Source of the DNA: Selaginella moellendorffii
Taxonomy: Eukaryota; Plantae; Lycopodiophyta
Assembly: GCF_000143415.4 (NCBI RefSeq)
Contig: NW_003314335.1
Span: forward strand, 808,655 to 872,654
Reading direction: 5' to 3'
Length of the DNA: 64,000 nucleotides
Shown: piece by piece, positions 16,043 to 62,006 of the stretch
How the letters are laid out: every line of letters begins with the position of its first letter
How positions within the stretch are numbered: position 1 is the stretch's first letter
The notes under the pieces: generated by a model
Databases searched by the model: none
What the model saw: only the letters and a program-made list of their open reading frames with translations
Told to the model about the DNA's origin: nothing
Translations under genes and position numbers: made by a program

Positions 16043-16718
16043 CGCCAGCAAGAAGAGCAATGCAGGGGTTTTGGAGATGACCCACAAGAACCCAATGCCG
16101 GCCGAGACGATCCAAGCAAGAGCGCAACCAAGAGCGCAAGAGAAAAGAAGAGTCCAAGCTCCAAAGCCCAGCGCTCTCGCTCGAAGAAGAAGAAGAAGAA
16201 GAAGACGAGGAAGAAGGAAGGAAGGAAGGAAGGAAGCGCTCTAAAGCTCAAACCTCGCGGAGTGGAATCGCGCTACTACTACTCGGCGGCGATCAATGCC
16301 TTGCGCTACAAGCCAGGAAGATCGTCATAAACGCGCGAGGCAAGGATTTCTTTTTGTGCTCTCTCCTTTCAGGAAGATCGAGGAGAAAGACATGAAAAAG
16401 AGGAAGAAAGCCTCTCTCTTTCCTTTTTTTTTTTTTCTCTTCTAAGAGGAAATTGAGAGCTCTCTCTCGAAGTTTACCTCTCTAGGCTACAATAGAAACA
16501 ACCAACATGCTTCCAGGGTGAGTGAACGTGTCCTTGGTATGGACATGTGTCTCTCGCTCCACTGGTTTCCCAACTGGGAGAGGCTCTAAGGACAGTGTCC
16601 TTAGCAAAGCCGGGCCTTGCCGCCTTGGACGCGCTGACGTGTCCGCCGCCGCGGCATGCCACGCTGGACGACCGTCCCCCGCGAGAGCTCACACTGCATT
16701 TTAGGGTTCTTGGCGCGC

Positions 16719-18089
16719 ATGGCGGTGGATCCGCCCGGGCGGCGCCGCGGCGAGGCGAATTCCTACGCCGCGATGCTGCGCAAGTGCTCCGCGCTGTCGC
16801 AGGTGAAGTGGGTGCACAGGATCGTGGCGGAGGATGGGTGGGAGGATGATACCTTCGTGGCGAATTTCCTGATCCAGATGTATGGGCGCTGCGGCGGCGC
16901 GCAGGAGGCGGCGAAGGTGTTTGAGAAGCTGCCGCGGCGAAATCAATTCTCCTGGAATATCATGCTAGCGGCATTTGCCCAGAATGGGCATTTGCAGGAG
17001 GCGCGTCAGATCTTTGATCGGTCGCCGCACAGGAATGTGGTGACTTGGAATGCGATGATGGCTGCGTATGCGATGGCTGGGCGGATCCGAGAGGCCGAGA
17101 TCGTCTTCAAGAAGATGCCCCAGCGGGATCTCATCTCGTGGAACTCGATGCTCACTGCATATGCCCAGCACGGGTATTTTGAGGAGGCTTTGCGGCTCTT
17201 TGCGGCGATGGATCTCGAGCCCGACAGCGTGACTTTCCTGTGTGTTCTTGAAGCCTGCGGCGAGATCGGTCAGGAAAGATCCCAGTGCAAGCTTCTTCAT
17301 TCGAGGGTCTCGAATTGCGGGCTGGAGATGGAGCTTAAGATCAGCACCGCGCTGATCGACATGTATGGGAAGTGCTCCAGCCCCGAGGACGCCAGGGACG
17401 TGTTCTGGAGGATCAGCGACACCGCCCAGGACCTCGCGCTCTGGAACGCGATGATCTCGGCTCACGCCAAGAACCGCCAAGTTCGCGAGGCTCTCTATCT
17501 CTTCTCGCTGCTCGATCTCCAAGGAGCGAGGCCAAACGACTCCACGCTGGTAAGCATTCTAGACTCCGCCGCTAGCTCCTCGGATCTAAACCATGCCAGG
17601 TTCGTGCAAGGCGTTGTGGAGGAGGGTGACGAGGCGCTGAGCGTGGACGTGAAGAACGCGATCATCGGCATGTACAAGCGGTGCGGCAGCATCGAGAACG
17701 CGAGGAGGGTGTTCGTCCGGATCGAGAACAAGGACACGGTGTCGTGGAACTCGATCATCGCGGCCTACGCCGACTTGGGCGATTGCAAGGAGGCGATCGA
17801 GCTGTTCGAGCTCATGAGTTTGGAGGGATTTGAGCCGAGCAGGGCGACGTATCTCAGTGTTCTTGGGGCGTGTAGCCACGCGGGGCTGGTCAAGGAAGGG
17901 GTGGAGGTGTTCGCGAGCATGGTGGAGTTTGGCGTGGTGCCGACGAGGGAGCACTTTAGCTGCATGGTGGATTTGTTTGGGAGGGGAGGATGGGTGGCGG
18001 AGGCACACGAGGTGTTTAGCAAAGGTCCCTTGAGGCCCAGCGTTACCGCTTGGAGGGCCTTGTGTGGAGCGTTTGTCCAGCAACATTAA
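16719..18089 (+). CDS. PLS-class PPR protein ending early in the E domain
   Basis: P/L/S motifs, ACSHAG, CMVDLFGRGG. Stops after AWRALCGAF, just before an assembly gap. Confidence 0.85.
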   Translation: MAVDPPGRRRGEANSYAAMLRKCSALSQVKWVHRIVAEDGWEDDTFVANFLIQMYGRCGGAQEAAKVFEKLPRRNQFSWNIMLAAFAQNGHLQEARQIFDRSPHRNVVTWNAMMAAYAMAGRIREAEIVFKKMPQRDLISWNSMLTAYAQHGYFEEALRLFAAMDLEPDSVTFLCVLEACGEIGQERSQCKLLHSRVSNCGLEMELKISTALIDMYGKCSSPEDARDVFWRISDTAQDLALWNAMISAHAKNRQVREALYLFSLLDLQGARPNDSTLVSILDSAASSSDLNHARFVQGVVEEGDEALSVDVKNAIIGMYKRCGSIENARRVFVRIENKDTVSWNSIIAAYADLGDCKEAIELFELMSLEGFEPSRATYLSVLGACSHAGLVKEGVEVFASMVEFGVVPTREHFSCMVDLFGRGGWVAEAHEVFSKGPLRPSVTAWRALCGAFVQQH

Positions 18090-27220: not shown

Positions 27221-28609
27221 ATGGCGCTTGGGTTATGGTCCTTGCCAGAAGTGGACAAAGCATTACAAGAAATAGTAAGGCCCGATGAGCATCTGTATTC
27301 GGTAAAAGCTGATAGCTGGCTATGGTATTTGCCAGAAGTGGACAAAAAATTACAAGAAATACTAAGAGCCGATGAGCATCTGTATTCGGTAGAGGCTGAT
27401 AGATGGCCATGGTCTTTGCCAGAAGTGGACAAAGAATTACAAGGAATAGTAAGAGCCGATGAGCATCTGTATTCGGTAGGGGCTGATAGATGGCCATGGT
27501 CTTTGCCAGAAGTGGACAAAGAATTCGATGAGCATCCGTATTCGGTAGAGGATCACAAGCTACTTTACAAGCGCGTAGGCGAACTGGCAGCGGTGTTATC
27601 ATTAAAGAGATCGATGGACAAGCAAAGCGCGCTGGTGCGGTCCTTGGAGGCAATGGAGTTTAACAAGACAAGCATAAAGGACTTGTTCTCAGTGGAAAAG
27701 GAGCTGGGTAGGGGAGGCCAAGCAGTAGTCTACCAAATCAAAAGAAAGATTGATGGTCACTTGTTTGCTTGCAAGTCGACTAGAATCACAGACTATGATC
27801 TGAAGGAGCCCATCGACATTGATCTCCCACATGGAGATCCGGAGGAAGCAGAACTGGAGATCAGAGCACTCACAAGACTGTCCAAGAGCAAGGAAAAGAG
27901 TGGTGTGGTTCAACTGGTGGACGTTTTCAAGGACAAAGATTATTATCACTTTGTCATGGAGTTGTGCAGGGGCTCACTGAAAGACGTGTTGAGTGACAAG
28001 AAGAGGCTGAGTGAGCATGAGGCAGCCATAGTGATCAAAAAGGTGGCTAGGACTGTGGGCAAGATACACGACATGGGCATAGCTCACAGGGACATCAAGA
28101 CTGCCAACATCCTCCTAGGGTTTGAGGAGAAGTTGTTTGACGCTATAAAGTTAACTGACTTTGGACTGTCTTGGGTGAGCGAGGGGCCACAATCATTTAA
28201 AATGAGAGGCCAGGTCGGGACGGAGGTGTACAATGCCCCAGAGATGGTGGCTAATAAGGAGTATGACGAGATGGTGGATGCCTGGGGTGTGGGCATTGTC
28301 TTGTATGAGATCTTGTCCGGGGAGTTTATACTCCAGGGCGACTGGACAAACATCAGCGTCGAAGCCAAAGATCTCATTCTCCAGTTGCTCCACTTAGACC
28401 CAAGAAAGAGGCTGCCAGTCCACGAAGTTGAGAAGCATCCATGGGTCGTCAAGCATTCCGCGCTACAGCCAGAACTGTCCAGTTTGGTGCTGGGTAGCAA
28501 AGCCAACTTGGAGACGAAGGAGATGTTTTTGGAGCGGAGCTTGAAGCGAAGGCGAGGTGATCAGGAAGAAGCAGAGGAAAGTCCTGTGGCAAAAAAGGTT
28601 CTTGTTTAA
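27221..28609 (+). CDS. Intronless CAMK/CDPK-related Ser/Thr kinase lacking EF hands, with N-terminal 29-aa repeats
   Basis: ELGRGGQAVV, FACK, HRDIKTANILL, TDFG, VGTEVYNAPE, DAWGVG, W..IS.EAKDLI..LL..DP.KR...HPWV. Basic C-terminus (KRRR...AKKV). Confidence 0.88.
   Translation: MALGLWSLPEVDKALQEIVRPDEHLYSVKADSWLWYLPEVDKKLQEILRADEHLYSVEADRWPWSLPEVDKELQGIVRADEHLYSVGADRWPWSLPEVDKEFDEHPYSVEDHKLLYKRVGELAAVLSLKRSMDKQSALVRSLEAMEFNKTSIKDLFSVEKELGRGGQAVVYQIKRKIDGHLFACKSTRITDYDLKEPIDIDLPHGDPEEAELEIRALTRLSKSKEKSGVVQLVDVFKDKDYYHFVMELCRGSLKDVLSDKKRLSEHEAAIVIKKVARTVGKIHDMGIAHRDIKTANILLGFEEKLFDAIKLTDFGLSWVSEGPQSFKMRGQVGTEVYNAPEMVANKEYDEMVDAWGVGIVLYEILSGEFILQGDWTNISVEAKDLILQLLHLDPRKRLPVHEVEKHPWVVKHSALQPELSSLVLGSKANLETKEMFLERSLKRRRGDQEEAEESPVAKKVLV
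27234..27550 (+). repeat. 87-bp coding tandem repeat, 3 full copies plus 1 internally deleted copy
   Basis: Units start at 27234, 27321, 27408 and 27495, encoding W(S/Y)LPEVDK.LQ.I.R.DEHLYSV.AD.W. Confidence 0.92.
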
Positions 28610-34800: not shown

Positions 34801-37296
34801 CATGTCCAAATTCACAATCTAGGGACATTCCATATTTAGTAAGTTTCGAGCTTGTCCCAGAGACTAACTCTTGATACTAAGGGAGGCTTGGGGTGAAAGC
34901 CCAAAGCGTGTGTTCCTCAAGGGGGGGGGGGGGGTTCCAAATGTATAGTAGGGATAGTGGGTAGGTTGGGCATGGCTGACCAACCTGAGGCATAGTCTAG
35001 CTCCCGCTTGCGTGCCTGTCCTTGTTCTGCGTCCGGCTTGGGTCTAAGCCCAAGTTCCATTCCATGCTAGTTGGTGGAGTACCCATATCCTCACGTTAGG
35101 CCACCGGTATGCCAAAATAGCGCCAGACTCCGTTTGGCTCCGTTTTGTGTGCTGGTCCTGGCATTGGGATGCTAGTTACTCTAGGACTGTTCCAAGTCGC
35201 TCCGGGCTCCTGTCCCTTCGCTCCTTGGGCTTTATGCTAGGGAGTTGCTCCGTGGTTCGGTTCCATCACTCCTTGGCTCCACACTTGGGAGTTTGGCACC
35301 GTTCCTTCGTTCAGTGGCCCAAGGCCCTGAACCTCGGGTTCCTATGGACACGTGGCATGGACACGTGGCATCTGTCACGTGGCACAAAGAGGGTTTAGGT
35401 ACCGCTTCATGGTGTTATCCTATGGTAAATCACCATAGGATAAAGGGTCAAAACCACGTGCACTACATTTGGTATCAGAGAATGAGTCTCAGCGAGTACT
35501 ATTCAATGAGATTGGGCAACTAGTCTCATTGCATACGCAGAGATGAAAACGATGATCCGAGTGGGTACACATTTGGGTGCAAAGGCTTCGCAATTGGTTC
35601 CTTGGGTATGGATATTGTTACCTTATTGTACCTTATGATGTGAGCTTGCGCTTGGGCTCATAGGATGGATTGGAGATGTTCCGTTTGCACGAGTTTGAGT
35701 TTGGGCTCGTGAGTGAGGCACATTAGCAATTCAAGGTTGCACTTTGAGTTAGCAGGATTAATGTTAGCCTATCAGTGGTTCCATGAGTTGTTCCTTGTAC
35801 CATGGGTGAAAAGCAAACTTCCTTGGGTTGCTATGAGTGGCAAATAGGCTGGTCCGTAGCTGTTTAGCACGGTACTAGTGGATCCTTCCTAGGCATGATT
35901 ATAAGTGGATCAATCAAGACTATAGAATTAGTCTATTGGTTCAAGTAGTCATGGCCGTGCTCTCTCATAAACTTTTCTTCGATTGAACTGAAGGCAGTGT
36001 GAAAGTAAGCTTGAGGTTTGGTCAAAGATGAGATCGAAAAGAGAGTCATCGGGGACAAAGGATCAAACACGTAAATCATTTTCTCTTCTCGGAGAGATGA
36101 TTCGCAATGAGGTGCTAACTCATTGCTCGTGTTTGCATCATGCAATCAAGAGTCCCTACCTTGATGCATGTTGGAAATGATAGTCTTACAAATAGTGAGT
36201 TGTGGGATGGATAGTGGTGAAACGCTAAACCATTTTGTCTAAGCTTGCTATTGGAAGACTTGGGTTGCAATACTCAATTCTTTTCCGGGGAACCTTGTGT
36301 AAGCGACTAATTTTTCCATTTTACTTTAGTCACTTAACCACACCTCCGACCACTTGGAGGAGTCTCATTCACCACCTCCACAAGTCCCAGTTAGGACTTG
36401 GGGCTTGCTAGCCCCGAGAATGGCATCCATGCCACTCAACCTTTGCACTTGGTCTAAGTGCTCCACGTGTCCGATCCCATGATCGACACCCCAAGGTACC
36501 ACCGACATATCGGCCCGTTACGCTGAGGCCATGCCTATTCACCTTGGTCACACCGGTAGTCCAACACCACCTACATTGCAATCCTGTCTCTCATAGACTG
36601 GGCCATCCATCGATGAGTGATCATCCCAGATCCACTCCTTAGCATCCTTAGGATGCTCCTAGACTTAGGGAATAACCTTCCCCAATATCTCTTCCCCGGT
36701 CCCACTAAGTCCCTCTCTGTCGATGGCCGTGTTCACCAACACTGCCACTAGATCAAAGCCCGCAGGCCCGAGCTCTAAGTCCAACTGTCCTCTGGGACTT
36801 CCTCATTGGGTGACCGTGTCCTTTGTCACCACACCAGAGGGCCACTCCTCTTCCTTTCCACAGTCTGGGACTTTGGGACAACATTTCGGAACACCGTGGC
36901 CTTACGCAAGCCTCATGGGTACTTTCCCCGCCTTTCGCCTTTAGGTGCTCTAGCCATGGGCCTAGAGCAAGGTTCCGTTGAGCCACGATAGGTATCCAAG
37001 TAGGTAGTGCCACCCACACTTGGACTGGGAGCATCGGCCAGTCGATCTCCCGGGGGAACTAGAGCTGGCTCTTGAACACTTCACCAAGCTACCCCGCTTG
37101 TCGGTCCGTGTTCACTCTAGTCTTGGACTTCCCAGTGGGCAGCTCATCACCCAACACTGGGTCCGGCCTTCCTGGGCCAAACTGGCCTTTCCTGGCCAAA
37201 CTGGCTCCACTGCAGTCCTCCCCCTACTATACTTTTGGAGCTCACCAAACCCCCCAGGGTCTGGGAGACGAACGCTTTGGGCTTTCACCCTCTCAG

Positions 37297-37880
37297 GCTC
37301 GGACTCGGACTCGGACTCGGACTCGGACTCGGACTTGGACTTGGACTCGGACTCGGACTCGGACTCGGCCTCAGTCTCGGCCTCGGCCTCGGTCTCGGTC
37401 TCGGTCTTGGTCCCGATCTCGGTCTTGGTCTCGGTCCCGTCTCGGTCTTGGTCCCGGTCTTGACTTCGAGCTCCATCTCGGGTCCATCTTGGACTCCATC
37501 TTGGACTCCACCTTGGACTCCATCTCGGGTCCTTCTCGGACTCCATCTCGGACTCCATCTCGGGTCCATCTCGGGTCCCATATCGGGTCCATCTCGGGTC
37601 CATCTCGGGTCCATCTCGGACTCCATCTCGGGTCCATCTCGGACTCCATCTCGGACTCCATCTCGGACTCTATCTCGGGTCCATCTCGGGTCCACCTCGG
37701 ACGCCATCTCGGACTCCATCCCGGGTCCACCTCGGACTCCATGTCGGACTCCATCTCGGACTCCATCTCGGACTCTATCTTGGGTCCATCTTGGGTCCAC
37801 CTCGGACTCCACCTCGGACTCCATCTCGGGGTCCTTCTCGGACTCCACCTTGGACCCCAACTCGAGTCCATCTCGGACAC
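37297..37880. repeat. Hexamer/12-mer minisatellite inside the B LTR ((GGACTC)n, CTCGGACTCCAT/CTCGGGTCCAT); second copy 48411-49030
   Basis: Direct reading. Copy number differs between the two LTRs. Source of the many low-complexity ORFs in the track. Confidence 0.9.
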
Positions 37881-39477
37881 TTCCACGTGTCATGTGTTGG
37901 TCCTTTCGGGTCCCTTTTTGGAGCCTCGCTTATTGCTCTCTTTGTGCTTGTTCATCGAGCACTTCGTTGGGAGTTCCACTCCCGCTCTCGACCTTTCAAG
38001 TTAGGGCTTTTAGTCCAAACGTGTTATGCTCGTTTGGTTTTCACTTTGGCCACCACCAAATGGCACCCTTCCGGCTCCACTTTGGGGCCTAGGGATTTTG
38101 TGTCTCACAACTCCACCACCCATAAACGAAGTTTGATGTCCTCATCAAAAGGTAAACCCTTTCATAAAGTAACACCCGCATGTGTTACCATTTCCATCCT
38201 TGGCACCCAGCCAATATCTATCTATGGTTTGACACCAAAGGCTCACCATGCCTTGTCCATCCTCTAAGGAGCATAGCCTCTCCAACTTAGAGGCTCATTT
38301 GACCACTTGTGGTGGTTCTCTCCTTTTATTGGTTTAGTTCTCACTAAACCTGTTAGAGACACCTTCTCTAACTCGATCCCACTACTCGTTCTCAAGTGGT
38401 CTCACTTTCCAGCGCTATAACCCTTGTGCTTTGGAACTTTTAATTCTGACTTCTCGAAGTCAATTTCCTAGGTGTCTCCGACACCTTGCATTGCACATAT
38501 TGTGCAACTCCACTTCCTCATCCTAGGAAGTTCTCCACTTGAGGGCACCATCATCCTTTGTTCGATTTCATGCCATCTTTGGCACTGAGTTCCAGTTATC
38601 ATATTTTGTGCTAGGGCTGTCCACAGCCCTATCTTTTGGCTACTTTGCCGCTCCTTCACTTAGAGCTTTCACTTCGCCAAATTGGAGCACTTAGGAATCC
38701 ATCCTTGGAAGTCCACTTCCTTTCCCACAAGCCGTTAGCATCAAACACATTAGTGTTCCTTGGCTAACTTTGCCATTTGGATCCCTTCCATTAAATTCCA
38801 TGGCCCAAACTTGGCCACTAGTCCTTTGCTCCTATCCTTGATTATTGCACCCAGCAACATAGGATCGCTACCTCCATTTTTGAGGTATCCTTTCGGTTCC
38901 ATAGCAAAGACTCTTCTTTTCCAAGTCTGGAGGTTGTTCACCCCTAGTATGTCTCTTTAGCATCTTCTGCTATGGGCTCTATCCACGGCCCAACTTCGTG
39001 ACCCTCCCATGGGTCTCTTATAGAGACTACCTTCCTCGGACTCACTATGCCATCGCACGGACATAGTTTACTTCCCTTAGGTGCTTGTCCCACTTGGTTA
39101 TCATGACCAAGCCACACCACCTTAAACAGTTCAATTTCAACATTTTGAACCAGGAACTTCATTCCTTAGCCAACCAAGGACCTTGTTCTTATTTGGCCAT
39201 AAGATCACCTAGTGATCTCACTTTGGCACCTTAACAGAGTTGCCAAGAGGTACTTGGTCTTCTAGACCTTCAAGTTGTTGACTATAACCCCGGGGGCATC
39301 CCCCACACTTGGCGGTGCACCCAAGCCAGCCCTTACGGCCAAGGGTTCATAGCAACTAAGATTAGGTGTCCCCATCTCACTCACCACGTCCTTGGTGCCA
39401 CTTGCACCAAAGCGTTCAAGTTAGATATGCCGAGCTTTCACACTAAGCAATCTAACCATGCATCACGACTCCGAGGC

Positions 39478-42400
39478 TGTAAGGAACCAACTCGCCGAGG
39501 TGTCGTAGGCTAAGGGAACCCCGAAAGCATGACCAAAATGACAAGGAGTTCATCGGATGGGACCAAGTCAAAGATCGAGTCCAAGACCGACTCTAGGACC
39601 GAGTTCGAGATAGAGTCCGGAATCGAGTCCAAGACCGACTCGGGGACCGAGTTCGAGTCCGAGTTCGAGACCGAGTTCAAGACGGAGTCCGAGATCCGAA
39701 ATCAGGTCCGAGACCGAGTCCGAAGTCGAGTCCGAGGTCGGGCCCGAGATCGGGTCCGAGATCGAGTCCGCGATCGAGTCCGAGACCGAATCCGAAGTCG
39801 GATCCGAAATCGGATCCGAGATCGAGCCAGAGACTAAGTCCAAATACTAATACGGGTCAAGGGGTGAAAGCCCAAAGCGTGCGTCCCCCAGGGGGGGGGG
39901 GCTGCAGGGGGTTCCAAAAGTATAGTAGGGATAGTGAGGTCCAGGAACCAGTTTAGAAGGGACTCTCCAGTGGGGCTCCCAACCTGACTTGAGGTTGGGA
40001 CTGGGACCGAGGGGCCTTGGGTGGGAGTGAGCATGGACTTGGTTGGTGCCGGAGGGGCCATCCAAGGAAGTGCTCAAGAGCAGCTCCCACTCCCGAAAGG
40101 GAAACCGATTGCGGTGCTCCCGGCTCATGTGGAGTGGTGCCCCACTTGAGTACCATGCGGCTCATTGGTCCTCGCCCTTCCTAGGGGCTTGGGCCTTCCT
40201 TCGGGATGGAAGTGGGGGGTGAGAGGTACCCATACCGGGCCGTTAGGCCACGGTGTTTCGCCCCGGCGTCCCGAAGCAAGTGTTGCACTCAAGACTTGGG
40301 ATTTAGAGGGTCCCATGATCAAGTCTTGTGGTACCAAGGGATGTTAGGAACCTGGAAGCTTGGTGTGCTTGGCTGCTTGTGCTTGCGGGGAGTGTAGCCG
40401 AACCTTAAGTCCAGTCTAACCCGGGGAGGGGGATTGGGAGTGATTTGGGAATCCGTGGAAGGATGGCTAACACTCCGTTGCTCGTGCAGTGAGTAGCTGA
40501 AACCAAGTAGGAGTTGGTACCATAGGCGAGAACCTTGGCAAAGGGACTTAGCAAAAGCCAAGGCAGTGTTGGACGGATAAACGAGGTAAGCTGGCAAATT
40601 GGAAAGGAAAAATTTGTGGCTTACAATTTGGTATCGGAGCTTTGAGTTTTTGGTGATGCCCTTTGGGCTGTGCAATGCGCCGGCAACGTTTTCGGCGTTG
40701 ATGAACCACATCTTTGTACCCTATCTGGATCGCTTCGTGGTCGTCTATATTGACGACATCCTGATCTATAGCGAGACGCTAGAGGAGCATGCCGAACACT
40801 TGGCGAAGGTGTTTGAGAAACTAAGGGAACACAAACTGTATGCTAAAGAGAGCAAATGTGACTTTGCTCAACAAGAGGTAAAGTTTCTCGGGCATGTGGT
40901 GGGCCAGGACGGGCTCAAGGTGGACCCGGAGAAGGTCCAAGCGATCCAGGAATGGGAACGACCATCGAATGTACATGAGTTGAGGGCGTTCCTGGGGCTA
41001 TGCAACTACTATCGAAAGTTTATCAGACACTATTCGAGAGTAGCCCTGCCCTTAACGGACCAAACAGGAAAAGGGAAGATGGTATGGACAGCGGAATGCG
41101 AGGCAGCATTCGTCCACCTCAAAGGGAAGTTGAGGAAGGCTCCGGTGTTAGCCTTACCAGACTTTGGTAAAGACTTTGAGGTAGACACGGATGCTTCGGA
41201 CTTTGCGTTGGGCGCAGTTTTGAAGCAAGACAACCATCCAGTAGCGTTCTTCTCGAAGAAGCTGGACAAGGCTCAACGGAAGTGGCCTGCCCACGAGAAG
41301 GAATTGTTTGCAGTGGTCAAGGCACTCAAGGAGTGGCGACACTACCTTGGGAGACACTTCAAGGTTTACACGGACAATGTGGCAACGAAACACTTCTTGT
41401 CACAGCCCGACCTAAGGGGAAAACAAGGTCGGTGGGCCAATGCTTTGGCCGAGTTTGATTGCGAGATCCTGTACAAGCCTGGGAAGAGCAACATCGTGGC
41501 AGATGCGCTCAGTCGAAAAGCGAGCTTGAAGTTGGCGATATCTAGCGCAACAGCAACCTTTTGGGACGATGTGCGGACCGCATACGAGAGTGATGGTCTA
41601 GCACAAGAAGTGTTGCTGAGGAATCTGGAGGCGCGGGAAGCTCACCAGAGAGGTGAGCTGCCAACGGAAGAGAAAACGGGCTATGCGGAACGCAATGGAC
41701 TCATATATTACAAGCAAATGAGGGTGTATGTTCCAGAAGGGGAACTAAGGAAGGTAGCCTTGGAAGAGTGTCATGACGGACCTCTCGCGGGACACGGCGG
41801 AGTGCCCAAGACGATGGGCTTACTCAAAAGGAAGTATCACTGGCCAGATATGGCTAAGGACGTCCAAGACTATGTAAAGACATGTCCAACATGTCAGCAG
41901 GTCAAAGCCGTGACGAAGGCTAGTGGGGGCTTGTTGCAAAGCATCCCCATTCCAGATCGTCCGTGGAAATGTCTCACGATGGACTTCATCACGGGACTAC
42001 CCCCAAGCGAGGGGTTCGATGCGATATTCGTGGTGGTGGACCGATTTTCAAAGATGGCACATTTCATACCCACCACAACGGATGTGGATGCGGAAGGTGT
42101 GGCGAAGCTGTTCTTCGAACAAGTGGTTCGAGTGCGGGGAAGGCCGGAAGAGATTATCTCAGATCGAGATAAGATCTTCACCAGTAGGTTCTGGAGGACA
42201 CTCCTAGAACAGTATCGCACCAAGTTGAAATTCAGCACGGCCTATCACCCACAGACAGGTAATGGGTATTGAGTCAAGATTGATGGCACTAACACTTCTT
42301 GACAGACGGACAAACGGAAAGGGTGAATAGGCAGCTGGAGGATTATTTGCGATGCTATGTCTCGGGAGACCAGACCGACTGGGTAAGTCATTTGGGACTT

Positions 42401-44711
42401 GCGGAAATGTGTTATAACAACTCACCACATTCGAGCATCGGGGTGAGTCCATGGGAAGTCATCAATGGGCGAGCTATTGAAGGTCCTGTGGAACTCGGCG
42501 TGGCCGAGTATCATGGAGAGTTACCCGCAGTGGAGGCATTCACGGCGGAAAGACTCAACATTTGGAATCTAGTGAGGGATTCCTTGGAACGAGCTCAACA
42601 AAGGCAAACCAAGTACGCGAACCTAAAGCGCCGGGATGTAGAGTTCCAAGCTGGGGAGAAGGTGTGGCTGAACACCAAGAACCTTAGGCTACCAAGTGGG
42701 ATCAGCCGAAAGTTGACCCAAAGGTAAAAATGCATGTATTCCTGTAAATGAATTGATCTTGAGTTCCTTAAGCAGGTTCGCGGGGCCTTACGAGATTGAG
42801 GCACGAATCGGTAAAGTGGCTTACCGACTCCGACTTCCTCGAGAGATGGGGAAGATGCACCCAGTGTTCCATGTGAACTTACTCAAGCCGTACTTTGAGG
42901 ATCCGCTTCGCAAGGACCAAGTAAGACCTTTACCTGAGGTTATCCAAGGGGAAGAGGAATACGAAGTCGAGGCCATCCTCAATGCGCGCAAGAGCAAGCG
43001 ACAAGGACGCGAGGTGAGAGAGTTCCATGTGAAGTGGAAAGGATTTCCACACTGCGAAGCAACATGGGAACCGGAGGAGAACCTAGCGAACGCGCGAGAT
43101 CTAGTGGAGGAATTTCTGCAAGGCAGAACTCTATGTACTTATGCAAAGTTCAATTAAAAATATATCAATTTGCAAAGTTGAGCAAGTGGCATATGTTGGG
43201 ACCCGAAGGCGCGCCGAAGGTGAGCTAATTAGCATGGGTTAGCTAGGTCGACCAGGCGTAAGGAGCTACGCCCGACTCCCTGCGGGGATGTCGAATCCGT
43301 AGACGTATTCTACGGAGGTTGGGTTTGAGTCCCAACCCCCTAGTAAAGCAAGGCTGGGTTCAAGTCCCGACCCCATACTAGGGCGTGGTGAGGGGTGGAG
43401 TATAGGGACACCTATATTCCGTTGTCATGAGCTCTTGGCCGGGGAGGCTAACTTAGGCACACCGCTAAGTGGGGGGATGCCCCCGGAGACATGGTCAACA
43501 AGTCGTAGGATAAAAAAGAGACGTTCGATGTGGGCATCGAACTTCTTCTATGGGTGGTGGAGTTGTAAGGAACCAACTCGCCGAGGTGTCGTAGGCTAAG
43601 GGAACCCCGAAAGCATGACCAAAATGACAAGGAGTTCATCGGATGGGACCAAGTCAAAGATCGAGTCCAAGACCGACTCTAGGACCGAGTTCGAGATAGA
43701 GTCCGGAATCGAGTCCAAGACCGACTCGGGGACCGAGTTCGAGTCCGAGTTCGAGACCGAGTTCGAGACGGAGTCCGAGATCCGAAATCGGGTCCGAGAC
43801 CGAGTCCGAAGTCGAGTCCGAGGTCGGGCCCGAGATCGGGTCCGAGATCGAGTCCGCGATCGAGTCCGAGACCGAATCCGAAGTCGGATCCGAAATCGGA
43901 TCCGAGATCGAGCCAGAGACTAAGTCCAAATACTAATACGGGTCAAGGGGTGAAAGCCCAAAGCGTGCGTCCCCCAGGGGGGGGGGGCTGCAGGGGGTTC
44001 CAAAAGTATAGTAGGGATAGTGAGGTCCAGGAACCAGTTTAGAAGGGACTCTCCAGTGGGGCTCCCAAACTGACTTGAGGTTGGGACTGGGACCGAGGGG
44101 CCTTGGGTGGGAGTGAGCATGGACTTGGTTGGTGCCGGAGGGGCCATCCAAGGAAGTGCTCAAGAGCAGCTCCCACTCCCGAAAGGGAAACCGATTGCGG
44201 TGCTCCCGGCTCATGTGGAGTGGTGCCCCACTTGAGTACCATGCGGCTCATTGGTCCTCGCCCTTCCTAGGGGCTTGGGCCTTCCTTCGGGATGGAAGTG
44301 GGGGGTGAGAGGTACCCATACCGGGCCGTTAGGCCACGGTGTTTCGCCCCGGCGTCCCGAAGCAAGTGTTGCACTCAAGACTTGGGATTTAGAGGGTCCC
44401 ATGATCAAGTCTTGTGGTACCAAGGGATGTTAGGAACCTGGAAGCTTGGTGTGCTTGGCTGCTTGTGCTTGCGGGGAGTGTAGCCGAACCTTAAGTCCAG
44501 TCTAACCCGGGGAGGGGGATTGGGAGTGATTTGGGAATCCGTGGAAGGATGGCTAACACTCCGTTGCTCGTGCAGTGAGTAGCTGAAACCAAGTAGGAGT
44601 TGGTACCATAGGCGAGAACCTTGGCAAAGGGACTTAGCAAAAGCCAAGGCAGTGTTGGACGGATAAACGAGGTAAGCTGGCAAATTGGAAAGGAAAAATT
44701 TGTGGCTTACA
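39478..44711 (+). mobile_element. Element C: very young Ty3/gypsy chromovirus, gag-PR-deleted, inserted in B
   Basis: LTRs 39478-40625 and 43564-44711, 1148 bp each, with only ~3 differences seen by eye. TSD GAGGC (39473-77, 44712-16). PBS TGGTATCGGAGC 40629-40. PPT ATGGGTGGTGGAGT 43550-63. Confidence 0.96.
40641..43157 (+). CDS. pol: Partial pol (RT C-half, RNase H, integrase, chromodomain) in three segments: 40641-42258, 42306-42723, 42776-43157
   Basis: [39 protein letters not shown]...H...[22 protein letters not shown]|DGQTE, R|FAGPY, HPVFHV, chromodomain YEVEAIL...VKWKGF...TWEPEENL. Confidence 0.93.
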
Positions 44712-47700
44712 GAGGCATCCCTCGCTTGGCGGTGTGCCCAAACCAGTCTCCCCACTGAGAGTCCATGACCACCAAAATATAAATGTCCTCATATTCCAAA
44801 CCATCACCATGCCCTAGTGATTTGGGACTCGAACCCAAGCACTAGAGGGTCGGGACTCGAACCCAACCTCCGTATATGCATCTACGGATGGCATCACACC
44901 GGATGCCTGGCGTGACTCCCCACGCCGGTGCACCAACTTATACTTAAAGCGTGCTATAGATCACAGCTTAGGAACCTAGTTCCTCCCCACTGCCAAGTCC
45001 TCTCACTTGACAAGCCTGTGATCATGCATGGACTCCTCCATGCTTGGCCCCATGGCCCACCCTTTTTTTGAAGTTATCACCTTCAACTAGGGTATTTGTT
45101 CCCCTAACTTGCCAATCTCGCTTGGGCAAGTCCTCCGACCACGTAACATGGTTCCTGCACAAGCGTGAAAGCCCTTGATCATCGACTTTCGTTCAAAGCC
45201 CTCTCTTTGAACACTCGGGAACTACTTCCCTAGCCTTGATAGCCTTGCCTCATGGCAAGCTTCAAGACTACGCTTCTGCTGCGCCACTCTGATTTCATGC
45301 GTTCCTTGAACCATTTACGCTTGGCCTTTCTAGGTACTAAGCTACCTAGAATCCTCTTTGGGAACTTTGAAGGAACTCTGTCCCTTAGCTTGCTAAGGCC
45401 TCCCTTTTTTGCAAGCTTTCCAATTACCATATAGTCTAACATGGACAATTCCATATTTTAGACTCTCCATGGCATCACGGTTGCTAGCGGCAACACCCTC
45501 GAGCCCCCACTTGATTCTCCACTCCCAGCTGGCATAACCAACCTTGGTTATGCCCTTCGATTCCTATGGTTCGGTTCTATCCCTTTACTTCTTGCTTTTG
45601 GCTTCACACCTTTCTTTCGGTCATTCTCCTCCAGACTAGGAGGATAGCTTTGCACTTTCTATCATGCCTTAGCAAGTATTCTTAGGGATGAACCTACCCG
45701 ATAACCTAGGGAGTGGTTCCTCAATCTAGGTATGCTCACCATATAATCCCACACACCGGGATTACATTGTTGCTTACGGGCCTTTGCATGCCCATTGCTA
45801 GCCTTGCCAAAATTCCATTTTTGGCTTTGTCCAATTCGAGTAGACAGTCTTCTCCTGTCTCCGCCACCTTGGACGTTTGGATAGCACCTACTATCCATCA
45901 TTCGCTAGGGACTTAGTCCCTTGGGCCTTATCTATTGCCCTCACGACATCAAACACCACCTCCTGGTGTTCTAGAGTGTTCGGGTGTCCCAATGACGGCT
46001 TCCTTGACAATGAGTATTTCCTTTTATGACATTGACTTACTATATCGCAACATAAGCAACTTATCCCCCGTAAGGGTATATCCACTTCCCTATGCCATTA
46101 AGAAGGCTTGGGTAGCTACTTTCTACCCGTTTAACCAATTATTTTGCACCTCTTGCTTAGTTGCCTCGTAGTTGTCAAGTCCTACAACTCATTGCTGGTG
46201 CTTCCACACCTCCATCATTATCTGGGTCACCATACTCCAACTGCATGCTCTGCAACTTAGGCTATGCCATTCCCATTTCTATTAGGATTCCTTTGGCAAG
46301 GGGTTCTCATGAACCCACCAACATAGCCTCAAGGTATCACACATTGGCACATTTGGTGTCTCCACACCATCAGCTCCACGAGCCTACCTCTATGACACTT
46401 CTTCTTTGTGTCTAAGTCTTTGCCAAGACCAATACCACTCTTTCTCATGCCAACCATCGGTTAGCACAGCACCATAGAGGTCACACACAACTTTGTGTCA
46501 AAGTTGTTTTTTTTTTGGGAACACCTTTCCCACGACTTTAGCATGGCACATTTTGTCATCGATGAGATACCCTCTGTTCTCATCCTTGGATCCTATGATC
46601 CCCCCCATCCTTCGTGGGGTACAACACACCTCAATCCAAATGCTTCCATCAGTCCTTTTAGGACCATCCCTTGACTCTACTTGAGTCATCTAGCAGTTTT
46701 GGACTTGGTTAATCCACAGACCTGTAAGGTCCTACTTGTGAGGCACTAGCTCACTGGAATACACTTCTTGCATTCCTGTCCTACTCAAAAGGACTATTTT
46801 CACAAGTGTTACTTTGACACTTGATTTTGTTCTCTGGGGGCAACCTCTGCCCCTTAGGACTACTTGTCCATGTAATGAGAATACCAACTCATCTTTAAGT
46901 ACACCCCCCAACTCCTTGGGTTGTTCCAGCATTTATTAAAGGTAGCCCCGGCTACCATTTCAAGGACTTGAGTCCTCTTCCGTATTTGACCTCCCACGAT
47001 CATTACCTCTAGTCTCACATTCATGAGCACCAACCTCAATTATATGAGGATAATCTTGTGACTCCTTTATTGTTTTGGAGTCTACATCTTTCCCGTGATC
47101 CCAACTATAGTTGTTTATCACAACTACGTTAGCCCGTTTGTTGCGTCAAACGCTCATTTGGATCACATCCTCAGCTCTCTGAGGAGACCTTATACTGTTC
47201 CCAAGATCCCAAAGTCGTTCCATTATTGGCCCTTTTCTATCCACCACATTGTGCCCAAGTTCACGCATGAACTTGAGTGGAGAGCCATGTCCTCTCGACA
47301 TGCTACTCCTCCAGGATAGGCCCACTCCTAGGACCTTCCGATGCCAACATCAATGGTGATATACTTGAGCACCAATAAAAGTCGGACTAAGGAACAGCTC
47401 CGATACCAAATTGTAAGCGACTAATTTTTCCATTTTACTTTAGTCACTTAACCACACCTCCGACCACTTGGAGGAGTCTCATTCACCACCTCCACAAGTC
47501 TCAGTTAGGACTTGGGGCTTGCTAGCCCCGAGAATGGCATCCATGCCACTCAACCTTTGCACTTGGTCTAAGTGCTCCACGTGTCCAATCCCATGATCGA
47601 CACCCCAAGGTACCACCGACATATCGGCCCGTTACGCTGAGGCCATGCCTATTCACCTTGGTCACATCGGTGGTCCAACACCACCTACATTGCAATCTTG

Positions 47701-50700
47701 TCTCTCATAGACTGGGCCATCCATCGATGAGTGATCATCCCAGATCCACTCCTTAGCATCCTTAGGATGCTCCTAGACTTAGGGAATAACCTTCCCCAAT
47801 ATCTCTTCCCCGGTCCCACCAAGTCCCTCTCTGTCGATGGCCGTGTTCACCAACACTGCCACTGGATCAAAGCCCGCAGGCCCGAGCTCTAAGTCCAACT
47901 GTCCTCTGGGACTTCCTCACTGGGTGACCGTGTCCTTTGTCACCACACCAGAGGGCCACTCCTCTTCCTTTCCACAGTCTGGGACTTTGGGACAACATTT
48001 CGGAACACCGTGGCCTTACGCAAGCCTCATGGGTACTTTCCCCGCCTTTCGCCTTTAGGTGCTCTAGCCATGGGCCTAGAGCAAGGTTCCGTTGAGCCAC
48101 GATAGGTATCCAAGTAGGTAGTGCCACCCACACTTGGACTGGGAGCATCGGCCAGTCGATCTCCCGGGGGAACTAGAGCTGGCTCTTGAACACTTCACCA
48201 AGCTACCCCGCTTGTCGGTCCGTGTTCACTCTAGTCTTGGACTTCCCAGTGGGCAGCTCATCACCCAACACTGGGTCCGGCCTTCCTGGGCCAAACTGGC
48301 CTTTCCTGGCCAAACTGGCTCCACTGCAGTCCTCCCCCTACTATACTTTTGGAGCTCACCAAACCCCCCAGGGTCTGGGAGACGAACGCTTTGGGCTTTC
48401 ACCCTCTCAAGCTCGGACTCGGACTCGGACTCGGACTCGGACTCGGACTTGGACTCGGACTCGGACTCGGCCTCAGTCTCGACCTCGGCCTCGGTCTCGG
48501 TCTCGGTCTTGGTCCCGATCTCGGTCTTGGTCTCGGTCCCGTCTTGGTCTTGGTCCCGGTCTTGACTTCGAGCTCCATCTCGGGTCCATCTCAGACTCCA
48601 TCTTGGACTCCATCTCAGGTCCATCTCGGGTCCATCTCGAACTCCATCTTGGACTCCATCTTGGACTCCACCTCGGACTCCATCTCGGGTCCTTCTCAGA
48701 CTCCATCTCGGACTCCATCTCGGGTCCATCTCGGGTCCCATCTCGGGTCCATCTCGGGTCCATCTCGGACTCCATCTCGGGTCCATCTCGGACTCCATCT
48801 CGGACTCCATCTCGGACTCTATCTCGGGTCCATCTCGGGTCCACCTCGGACGCCATCTCGGACTCTATCTCGGGTCCACCTCGGACTCCATCTCGGACTC
48901 CATCTCGGACTCCATCTCGGACTCTATCTCGGGTCCATCTTGGGTCCACCTCGGACTCCACCTCGGACTCCATCTCGGGGTCCTTCTCGGACTCCACCTT
49001 GGACTCCAACTCGAGTCCATCTCGGACACTTCCACGTGTCATGTGTTGGTTCTTTCGGGTCCTTTTTTGGACCCTCACTTATTGCTCTCTTTGTGTTTGT
49101 TCCTCGAGCACTTCGTTGGGAGTTCCACTCCCGCTCTCGACCTTTCAAGTCGGGGCTTTTAGTCCAAACGTGTTACGCTCGTTTGGTTTTCACTTTGGCC
49201 ACCACCACATGGCACCCTTCCGGCTCCACTTTGGGGCCTAGGGATTTTGTGTCTCACACCTTGCTATTGCTTCTTGAGTAGCTTGGTGTTGGATTAGTTT
49301 TGAGTTTGGTCAGAAAGAGAGTGGCATGAACTTGTCCGTATTGTGAACAAAAGTTAGTGGTGTCGGGTGTTGTAAATCTCTATCGGTGGGGTGTGGCATT
49401 TATGTTGCATTTTGTCGAATCAAGTTGACATTTGATATTCACATAAACCTTTGAAGTAATGACATGGGCATTGCTTATAGTGGTGCTTGATTGATGATCA
49501 AGTCATTGTGATACTTATATCATATCCATGTGATAGTGAGCAATGTGTTTACGAAGTTGCTTGGTTAAACGATGGTCAACCCCAAACTGGTTGATGGAGA
49601 AGCTAGTCTACTTGCACGAAGTAGCATTGTAGTAGCTTTGACTGGATTCTCAATGATGGTCCATTATGCTAAGCTTAAGTTGGTACTTTGTTCCTTGAGT
49701 TTGCCCATTAAGGTGTTGGAAAAGGGTTGTAGCATTCATTTGCTATAGCTCGTCAGTTGATCTGTTAGCACTTGGAGTAAATTGTTGGATGGAGAAAATG
49801 TGTAGTTGAGGTATTGACATCACTAGCACTTGTGTTAGTGGAAATGGCATTGTTATTTCAAGTGACGAGGAAGTTTTCCTTAGAGCTTGATTTTCCATAT
49901 CATTTTTTTTGTTAGTGTTTTGGTTTCACATTGGATCTTGAAGGTGATTGAAGAAGAGTGTTAGTGCAATGTGGATATCCGAAGATGTGGTCTTCGTGAT
50001 CAAGCCTTGGGTGTTCACTTTGCACTTTGTGGATGTCGGTGTTGGATGTCGGTTATATGGGCAAAGATGTTCAATACTTAAGCATATTGTTGGATCATGA
50101 GAATTTGTGTTGAGGTGAACTTATGTGAAGTTGTTGGTAGGAGGAAGTTGGTTAAATCTTGAAAGTTTGCAATCCTGGACTGAGAGTCATTCTTTCTCTA
50201 GGATGGAAATTTTCCACAAATTTTCTTAGACTTCTCCAATGGCTGATCTGTTGGTCACTTTGCTGAAAACCATTCCATTTTTGTAAGTCAGTACAAACTA
50301 GTAAAAGGGTTAGAGTTGACTTTGGTTAGCTTAAACCTTAGTAAGTAGTTTGTATGATGCAACCCGAAAGGGGATGCTAACTTTGGGGCTAAGGCAATTG
50401 AGTTGGATAGAGTCTGGAGTTGGTGTAGAAAAGTGGCCGTTACGCTTTTCTAAGAAGGGTGACCCTTATACCTTTCTTTTGTAGCGTTGTGCTTGGTGGC
50501 AGGTTGCACCTTGCATTACGTTAGACTCTATGAGAGTAGTGAGCTCTCACTGATCTTGACTTAGTCTTGGTAGCCCTGTGCCTTGGCTGAGGATGGTGAT
50601 ATCCAACTTAGTTGTTTGAGGTTGAGATGTTGGTACCCGTACTATAGCTTTGTCTATGAGGAGGTTGTGTACCGATATGAGTCCATCTCATGGTCTTCAC

Positions 50701-60035: not shown

Positions 60036-61223
60036 ATGGGTTCTTTGGGAAGTATGGTCTTACAGGACGATGATCGTCTCAGAATCATGGAGTTCGGCAC
60101 AATGTGTGGCATTCCATCGGCTCTAAACGCAGTGATCAAGCTGGGAATTCCAGATATCCTTTCAAGTTCCCAAGACGCCCCCCTTTCTTCCGCTGAAATC
60201 ATCGCCCAAATCCCGGCCTGTGGATCATCCGGAAGTGGAGCCAACTTGGACAGGATACTCCGAGTCCTGTCCAGCGTTGGAGTCTTTCAAGAGTCTCTCC
60301 ACGATGGAGGAATCAGGAAGTATGGAGTCACTCCTCTTTGCAGGTACCTCGTCACAAATCCCAGCAATAGTGGATTGCCACTTTCTTCCTGGGTAACTCT
60401 CAACCAAGATGTGGTTTTCATGAAGACTTGGGAGTTTTTGTACCAATCTGTGACTACTGGAGCTGACCCCTTTACTGCTGCGCATGGAAAGCCGGTGTTT
60501 GATCTTACAGCCAATAACCCGCGGTTTCGGGGGATATTCGACTCTGCCATGTCCGATAACTCCAATGCTTACATGCGATTGGTTGTAGAAGCTTACGATG
60601 GTTTCCAGGGGGTAAGAACTCTGGTTGATGTTGGCGGAGGTATTGGAAACAGCTTAAGAGTTATTCTCGGTCGCCACCAAGGAATCAAAGGGATTAATTT
60701 CGATTTGCCTCATGTTATATCTAAAGCTCCAGATTTCCCGGGTACGCTCTGATTTGATTCATTACTTCTATGTAACTTCTTTTGGATTCAGGAGTGGAGC
60801 ATGTGAGCGGTGATATGTTTGATAAAGTTCCACAGGGTGATGTAATTTTTATGAAGGTGAGATTTGTGATTCTTTTGGGATCTGAAACGTTCATTTTTTT
60901 ATCTTGCACAGTGGATTTTGCACGATTGGAAGGATGAAGCATGCATCACTTTACTGAAGAATTGCTATGAATCACTCCCGAGCAGAGGAAAGGTAGTGGT
61001 GGTGGACTCTATATTGCCATCTGGGACAAACCACAGCTTTGGCTCTAGATTTGCACTTAACATGGACTTGCTCATGCTAGCGTATACAGGAGGGAAGGAG
61101 AGAACTTTGGAAGAGTTTGAGGCATTAGCAAATGCTGCTGGTTTTGCAGAAGTCAAGGTGGTTATTACACTAGATTTCTTATCTGTATTAGAAATGCATC
61201 GATATTCTGAGAAACTTATTTAA
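60036..61223 (+). CDS. Class II SAM-dependent O-methyltransferase (COMT-like), 360 aa; exons 60036-60741, 60792-60856, 60912-61223
   Basis: Dimerisation domain LDRILRVL, LVDVGGGIG, GINFDLPHVI, VEHVSGDMF, MK|WILHDW, GGKERT. Canonical introns give an uninterrupted frame. Confidence 0.95.
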
Positions 61224-61511
61224 ATCCCTTGGTCTCGTGTTTCTTTTGCGGTGTTGGTACACCATGTAAATAGTATATAAATAAATGAATGAACTATAGA
61301 TATTAGATGATATTCTTAAAATATTTAAGTAGGCATATAAAAGGTAATGGTTAATTTCCTTATAGAAAGAAGCAAGTTTTTGTTCTAGGGCATTTTGTTC
61401 CAGGAGCAATTGATTTTGGAGGCGAAATCCAAGGTGTGATAGGTGCCTTGAATCATGGAGATCAAGGGCCACATTCAGTGCCAAATTTCAGGAGAAATTC
61501 CTGGATGTAGA

Positions 61512-62006
61512 NNNNNNNNNNNNNNNNNNNNNNNNNNNNNNNNNNNNNNNNNNNNNNNNNNNNNNNNNNNNNNNNNNNNNNNNNNNNNNNNNNNNNNNNN
61601 NNNNNNNNNNNNNNNNNNNNNNNNNNNNNNNNNNNNNNNNNNNNNNNNNNNNNNNNNNNNNNNNNNNNNNNNNNNNNNNNNNNNNNNNNNNNNNNNNNNN
61701 NNNNNNNNNNNNNNNNNNNNNNNNNNNNNNNNNNNNNNNNNNNNNNNNNNNNNNNNNNNNNNNNNNNNNNNNNNNNNNNNNNNNNNNNNNNNNNNNNNNN
61801 NNNNNNNNNNNNNNNNNNNNNNNNNNNNNNNNNNNNNNNNNNNNNNNNNNNNNNNNNNNNNNNNNNNNNNNNNNNNNNNNNNNNNNNNNNNNNNNNNNNN
61901 NNNNNNNNNNNNNNNNNNNNNNNNNNNNNNNNNNNNNNNNNNNNNNNNNNNNNNNNNNNNNNNNNNNNNNNNNNNNNNNNNNNNNNNNNNNNNNNNNNNN
62001 NNNNNN
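61512..62006. other. Assembly gap (N run)
   Basis: Run of N. Confidence 1.

Follow-up and report, generated by a model that had tools for sequence, protein, structure and literature searches.

Two host-sized spliceosomal introns interrupt the integrase of a high-copy Ty3/gypsy chromovirus family

Introns are normally erased by reverse transcription. According to a review of 2025, the plant long terminal repeat (LTR) retrotransposons with functional introns are Ogre and EVADE only (PMC12786077). Ogre, a member of the Tat lineage of Ty3/gypsy elements from pea and Medicago, carries in its genomic copies an intron that a subset of the transcripts must lose before the pol domains beyond it can be read (PMC6317226, PMC4408406, PMC12786077). 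Here we describe a related arrangement in an LTR retrotransposon, referred to as element C (positions 39478-44711), which lies within a 64,000-nucleotide stretch of contig NW_003314335.1 of the Selaginella moellendorffii assembly (termed the window). Ogre is the closest known case and follows the same logic, but position, number and size of the introns are different. Its single, longer and spacer-like intron is located between the open reading frames (ORFs) for gag-pro and for reverse transcriptase, RNase H and integrase (RT-RH-INT), whereas element C, a chromovirus in a lycophyte-like host, bears two mini-introns of host size (47 and 52 nt), both of which lie inside folded integrase domains and not at the Ogre-type position. 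An initial annotation of the window had set Ogre aside as a different kind of splicing; this was too strong, as in Ogre, too, the remainder of pol becomes readable through splicing of an intron kept in the genomic copies.

A small intron within a single-ORF element is also present in copia, BARE1 and EVADE, where the spliced RNA is translated without turning up among the DNA copies, and the unspliced RNA is the template (PMC3735527, PMC12786077). There, however, splicing destroys pol to yield a Gag-only mRNA while the unspliced RNA encodes everything; in element C, splicing completes pol. In BARE, separate RNA pools arise from two start sites, and spliced RNA has never been found as DNA (PMC3735527), which provides a precedent for keeping template RNA unspliced. 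The SM1-Galahad family of Selaginella moellendorffii has hundreds of copies, LTRs of more than 1 kb with TG..CA ends, a poly-G tract of 11-25 and a tRNA-Met primer-binding site (PBS), and its long ORF1, ending in the integrase core, is followed by 'two additional short ORFs', of which the second encodes a group-I chromodomain (Novikova et al. 2012, PMC3350952). Element C belongs to a likewise highly repeated family and shares the TG..CA LTRs of more than 1 kb, G11 tracts, a tRNA-Met PBS and the three-piece layout, and its family is probably SM1-Galahad, as matched on the verbal description. In the published account each piece counts as an ORF of its own, and introns or splicing are absent from its text (PMC3350952); our findings would recast the two extra short ORFs as exons. 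The sister family SM2-Galahad has one uninterrupted ORF including integrase and chromodomain (PMC3350952), so that the introns would be a gain in one lineage. When protein libraries were queried with exon 1, its last 114 residues or exon 2, the best matches had about 50-60% identity or there were none, and an exhaustive search of representative proteins returned nothing closer than about 50-60% identity. One protein with the length of the SM2-Galahad polyprotein (P0227, 1577 aa) was rejected as a candidate for SM2-Galahad, as the equal length is a coincidence and the protein is encoded on an unrelated chromosome. Introns in a chromovirus integrase were not found in the literature searched, a scope that leaves out most subscription journals and gives no proof of novelty.

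Retroviruses and pararetroviruses package the unspliced RNA as their genome and express a replication protein from spliced RNA, examples of spliced mRNAs being those of env and the foamy-virus pol mRNA (PMC10309623). Element C would resemble them in this respect. It differs in that the viral splicing events are large subgenomic deletions which move a downstream ORF close to the 5' end, and not an in-frame repair of domains by mini-introns.

Intron 1 of element C (GTAATG...CACTAAC...TTGACAG) follows TAT CAC CCA CAG ACA G within the catalytic core of the integrase. It is located four codons ahead of a Glu codon (42317-42319) that lies 35 residues past the second Asp (SDRD) of the D,D35E triad and that we take to be the catalytic Glu, by alignment logic with retroviral integrases. 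If intron 1 is kept, an in-frame TGA (42270-42272) is reached five codons on; if it is removed, the frame continues as G|AC GGA CAA ACG GAA and reads YHPQT-D-GQTE. Intron 2 (GTAAAA...TTAAGCAG) follows ACC CAA AG. Its retention gives AGG TAA with a stop (TAA 42725-42727) immediately past KLTQR, and its removal gives KLTQ-R-FAGPY and completes the SH3 profile. The SH3_Tf2-1 match in exon 3 covers positions 24-64 of the 64 profile positions; as exon 3 begins at position 24, intron 2 splits a domain. Ten homologous polyproteins without introns each have exactly one residue, equivalent to the split Asp codon, separating their matches to exon 1 and exon 2; at the second junction, exactly one residue is likewise found in the best-aligned of the 10. 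On re-reading of the sequence, the coordinates (42259-42305 and 42724-42775), lengths and motifs given for the inserts in the initial annotation proved exact, as did both in-frame stops, and the proposed products YHPQTDGQTE, with the Glu, and KLTQR|FAGPY were borne out by translation and by colinearity with the homologues.

Both inserts also carry the signals of introns. They are flanked by proto-splice sites (cag|GTAATG...GACAG|a for intron 1 and aag|GTAAAA...AGCAG|g for intron 2), and a YURAY branch-point-like motif, CTAAC and TTGAT, respectively, occurs 10-40 nt before the 3' site. Their GC content is 0.40 (intron 1) and 0.33 (intron 2) compared to 0.52 in the flanking exons. The two introns of an O-methyltransferase gene within the same window, which served as yardstick for the host, measure 50 and 55 nt at a GC content of 0.34 and 0.35, and the earlier statement that the inserts match host intron size thus holds. 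Both inserts are genuine U2-type spliceosomal introns.

Public sequencing runs were matched to positions 40500-43600 of the window. X1, which carries the same organism label, and X4, which carries a second one, are DNA; X15 and X23 represent the RNA side. X1 yielded 44,626 contig pieces that match with ≥93% identity, and the word depth within the introns (68,319 at position 42271 and 85,243 at 42726) does not fall below that of the neighboring exons. The joined form lacking either insert did not occur once among these 44,626 pieces. X4 also covers both introns, with a 162-nt contig over 42641-42802 and two contigs at 42271, and again none of its 689 contig pieces showed the joined form. At position 42271, nearly all copies in X1 have an A where element C has a G. 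As the DNA of X1 and X4 carries both inserts, the introns predate the insertion of element C and were inherited through retrotransposition; element C itself is the product of a recent transposition of intron-bearing RNA, as indicated by three differences over 1148 bp between its LTRs and by its target-site duplication (TSD). The initial annotation had proposed that the introns are older than the insertion and had named inserts unique to this copy as the finding that would speak against it. The DNA runs agree with the proposal, as both inserts are family-wide, are present at full depth and are never joined. Both introns are fixed in this chromovirus family, which has a very high copy number and was active recently.

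Removal of the introns is visible on the RNA side, where the initial annotation had suggested looking for split reads. In X15, a single 1083-nt contig lies on 41933-42253, 42301-42721 and 42774-43114 and joins both junctions. The skips, which have GT..AG ends, amount to 47 and 52 nt and are exact for both introns, the edges being ambiguous by 5 and 4 bases due to the flanking repeats GACAG and AGGT. The RNA status of X15 is a program's guess from its transcriptome-sized contigs. The run gave three long contigs with a flat depth of 8-9, whereas in the DNA runs the same repeat is broken up into contigs of only about 90 nt. In X23, raw RNA-seq reads from a separate study, one of five reads skips intron 1, with 41 nt on its shorter side. 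Removal of intron 1 is thus seen in two studies and that of intron 2 in one. With regard to partial splicing as in Ogre, only spliced RNA was observed, from one read and one contig. This splicing evidence concerns full-length relatives within the family, not transcripts of the internally deleted element C.

Each of the listed family variants was assigned to a codon position within its exon frame. Third positions account for 21 of 24 variants in exon 1, 10 of 12 in exon 2 and both variants in exon 3; for exons 2 and 3 taken together, this amounts to 12 of 14 (p = 8e-5). The bias in exons 2 and 3 shows that purifying selection acted on the frames which depend on splicing at a time when the introns were already in place. 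Judged by codon position, exons 2 and 3 have been selected like the upstream frame during the spread of the family, which speaks against both dead passengers and the incidental splicing of junk.

Taken together, we consider it likely that the inserts are real, family-wide and spliced introns whose removal is needed for a complete integrase. The catalytic Glu, the SH3/GPY C-terminal module and the chromodomain are encoded by the spliced frame only. RNA without both mini-introns would accordingly be the sole template for translation of the complete enzyme, and removal of intron 1 alone would give an integrase that ends at KLTQR and lacks the GPY module and the chromodomain. The unspliced RNA of full-length copies should still encode Gag, protease (PR), RT and RH, and a role of unspliced RNA as mRNA is therefore compatible with this scheme. 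How much complete integrase is made in relation to the upstream products may then be governed by the efficiency of splicing, in the way that partial splicing acts on pol in Ogre. Reverse transcription of unspliced RNA would provide each new copy, element C included, with both introns. As intron-less copies with a single frame would otherwise be expected to be common, we infer that the template is unspliced and that spliced RNA is not copied; which RNA is packaged and any regulatory role are likewise inferred. If the template stays unspliced, either because it forms an RNA pool of its own or because spliced RNA is kept out of the particles, the introns would be maintained. A regulatory or sorting role of the introns, such as the splicing switch between genome RNA and mRNA put forward in the initial annotation, is, taken alone, a tentative proposal to which we give somewhat less than an even chance. 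A stronger version would be that the mini-introns themselves sort the RNA, with splicing directing a transcript to integrase translation and barring it from particles so that only never-spliced RNA is copied. Exclusion could then work through a splicing mark on the spliced RNA or a packaging cue inside an intron. This version we regard as unlikely.

Several points weigh against our interpretation. The RNA evidence is thin: the raw reads contribute a single read for intron 1, and the junction of intron 2 comes from one contig only, in a run that a program guessed to be RNA. Neither the X15 contigs nor the five X23 reads contain unspliced RNA, and none of the X23 reads covers an intron, so that the unspliced template is deduced from the intron-bearing DNA copies alone. 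The matched reads and contigs differ by 2.5-3.7% from element C and derive from full-length relatives. Logan contigs drop rare variants, and a few intron-less DNA copies could have escaped. Finally, the identity with SM1-Galahad is a match of descriptions without comparison of sequences.

As an alternative, the intron-bearing copies could be non-autonomous passengers, with a few intron-less master copies supplying integrase in trans and giving rise to the RNA that appears spliced. Element C itself, from which gag, PR and the N-terminal part of RT are deleted, is indeed non-autonomous, and contigs are unable to prove the absence of rare intron-less DNA. However, intron-less masters would beget intron-less daughters, and the joined form is missing from all 44,626 X1 and 689 X4 pieces; moreover, the strong third-position bias in exons 2 and 3 of intron-bearing copies is not expected in passengers that do not use their own integrase. 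We therefore regard this scenario as highly improbable. Even less credible, to the point of being negligible, is that the inserts are accidents which befell element C alone after its insertion, such as filler DNA at repaired breaks. The short direct repeats GACAG and AGGT next to the inserts would fit, as such repeats mark break-repair insertions in the neo-introns of Daphnia (PMC4202315), but the full family depth over both inserts in two DNA data sets refutes that they are private. We give just as little credit to translational bypassing, in which the ribosome would skip the 47 nt between matched ACA-G take-off and landing sites. Due to the GACAG repeat, a hop from ACA 42255-42257 to ACA 42302-42304 would yield the same peptide; yet the 47 and 52 nt are already absent from RNA-derived sequence, both inserts bear full intron signals, and we know of no comparable ribosomal bypass in the plant cytosol.

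A further alternative agrees with our interpretation on what the inserts are and concerns their role only. The introns may be real and spliced but without regulatory function, i.e., tolerated hitch-hikers in a family in which enough RNA escapes splicing to be reverse-transcribed. The proto-splice sites (CAG|A and AAG|G) are ordinary, and the introns are host-like. On the other hand, spliced RNA keeps the PBS, the polypurine tract and the LTR ends and should be able to serve as a template. Under blind packaging, copies without introns and with a complete frame would be expected to accumulate and spread, and none is seen in the DNA contigs. The absence of such copies argues weakly for some discrimination between the RNAs, and we consider mere hitch-hiking rather unlikely, albeit a serious contender.

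With regard to the preferred interpretation of spliced introns needed for integrase, a very high-copy family has retained a pair of introns midway through its integrase while being copied many times over. Between the RNA translated into integrase and the RNA turned into DNA there would be a difference of 99 nt, which can be scored in any read and would give a natural handle on how LTR retrotransposons split their transcripts between translation and replication. If the introns do act as a sorting device, the family would be a natural 'intron reporter' of the RNA that is packaged by a plant LTR retrotransposon, and also a dated case of intron gain within a retroelement.

Both introns combine proto-splice sites with flanking direct repeats, of 5 bp (GACAG) for intron 1 and 4 bp (AGGT) for intron 2. 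Direct repeats like these mark break-repair intron gains in Daphnia (PMC4202315), and those in element C may record how the introns first arose in an ancestral copy. Within 42212-42305, intron 1 is in register with the preceding 47-nt exon segment, both of which read GTA...GACAG. The two match at 20 of 47 positions (p = 0.003), but when the shared GTA and GACAG ends are left out, 12 of 39 positions match, which is not significant (p = 0.19). The same comparison gave no signal of tandem duplication for intron 2. A tandem duplication at the origin of intron 1 is thus no more than hinted at by the sequence. No sequence similar to either intron, and thus no donor, was found elsewhere in the window. 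An intron gain within a mobile element is thereby open to dating in this family.

The TG..CA LTRs, TSD, PBS, the order RT-RH-integrase and the C-terminal chromodomain (Pfam Chromo, 1.3e-16) identify element C as a Ty3/gypsy chromovirus, and the 5-bp TSD GAGGC together with the LTRs marks it as a bona fide LTR retrotransposon insertion (Table 1). Its LTRs differ at 3 of 1148 positions and are nearly identical, as noted before. By contrast, the statement that about 2.4 kb of pol contain no other lesion is correct only for the pol region that remains: gag, PR and half of RT, at its N-terminus, are deleted, and the autonomous set gag-PR-RT-RH-integrase is incomplete. The PBS, TGGTATCGGAGC, begins 3 bases past the 5' LTR and reads directly into an RT motif. 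It is joined to mid-RT at 40630-40640, where both sides of the deletion share 11 nt. Contigs back this internal deletion on either side, as DNA contigs depart from element C beyond 40640, where they enter the leader of full-length copies, while RNA and DNA contigs depart from it ahead of 40630, where they enter upstream RT. The shared 11 bases within 40626-40645, GGTATCGGAGC, are also present in the RT gene of full-length copies, and the join resembles the product of mis-annealing of the PBS copy in plus-strand transfer, or of a template switch.

Table 1 Features of element C (positions refer to the window).
Feature	Position	Strand	Evidence or remark
Left TSD, GAGGC	39473..39477	+	identical 5 bases at 44712-44716
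5' LTR, 1148 bp, TG..CA, G11 tract 39891-39901	39478..40625	+	99.7% identity with 43564-44711
PBS-like TGGTATCGGAGC, initiator tRNA-Met type	40629..40640	+	sequence
Exon 1 as kept in element C	40641..42258	+	translation, Pfam
Exon 1: RT C-terminal half	about 40632-40898	+	Pfam RVT_1
Exon 1: RNase H	41085-41456	+	Pfam
Exon 1: integrase zinc finger (Integrase_H2C2)	41742-41909	+	Pfam
Exon 1: integrase core (rve), both Asp, to HPQT and first base of Asp codon	41955-42258	+	Pfam
Intron 1, 47 nt, GT..AG, CTAAC branch motif, GACAG direct repeat on both sides	42259..42305	+	
Exon 2: remaining integrase core, (D)GQTE to KLTQ(R)	42306..42723	+	homologue colinearity
Intron 2, 52 nt, GT..AG, AGGT direct repeat on both sides	42724..42775	+	
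Exon 3: FAGPY/SH3-like module 42777-42893, chromodomain 42960-43118, stop 43155-43157	42776..43157	+	Pfam
3' untranslated region, purine-rich tract about 43552-43562 adjoining the 3' LTR	43158..43563	+	sequence
3' LTR, G11 tract 43977-43987	43564..44711	+	LTR comparison
Right TSD, GAGGC	44712..44716	+	sequence

A tblastn search of the window with the three exon products matched element C alone and did not reveal a second copy. The 3' untranslated region contains hairpins with tRNA T-arm-like motifs (GGTTCAAGTCC / GGTTTGAGTCC) at 43246-43372. Element C is bracketed by direct repeats of about 1.8 kb (36298-38109 and 47412-49258) that are 95% alike, older than element C and rich in 12-nt tandem repeats of the TCCATCTCGGAC type, which indicates that it is nested within an older LTR element.

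Among its neighbors, the O-methyltransferase gene at 60036-61240 (+) has mini-introns at 60742-60791 (50 nt) and 60857-60911 (55 nt), and an assembly gap (61512-62006) lies past it. The window also contains a PLATZ gene and, within 15 kb, three long intron-less pentatricopeptide repeat (PPR) genes at 3709-5931 (-), 9597-12395 (-) and 16656-18089 (+). The second of these encodes E, E+ and DYW deaminase domains and is of the organelle RNA-editing factor type. Together with a kinase gene, these genes point to a land-plant host with very short introns. The kinase gene, at 27221-28609 (+), has a single exon, and the N-terminus of its product carries about four tandem copies of a repeat of about 22 residues, LPEVDK.LQEI.RADEHLYSV.

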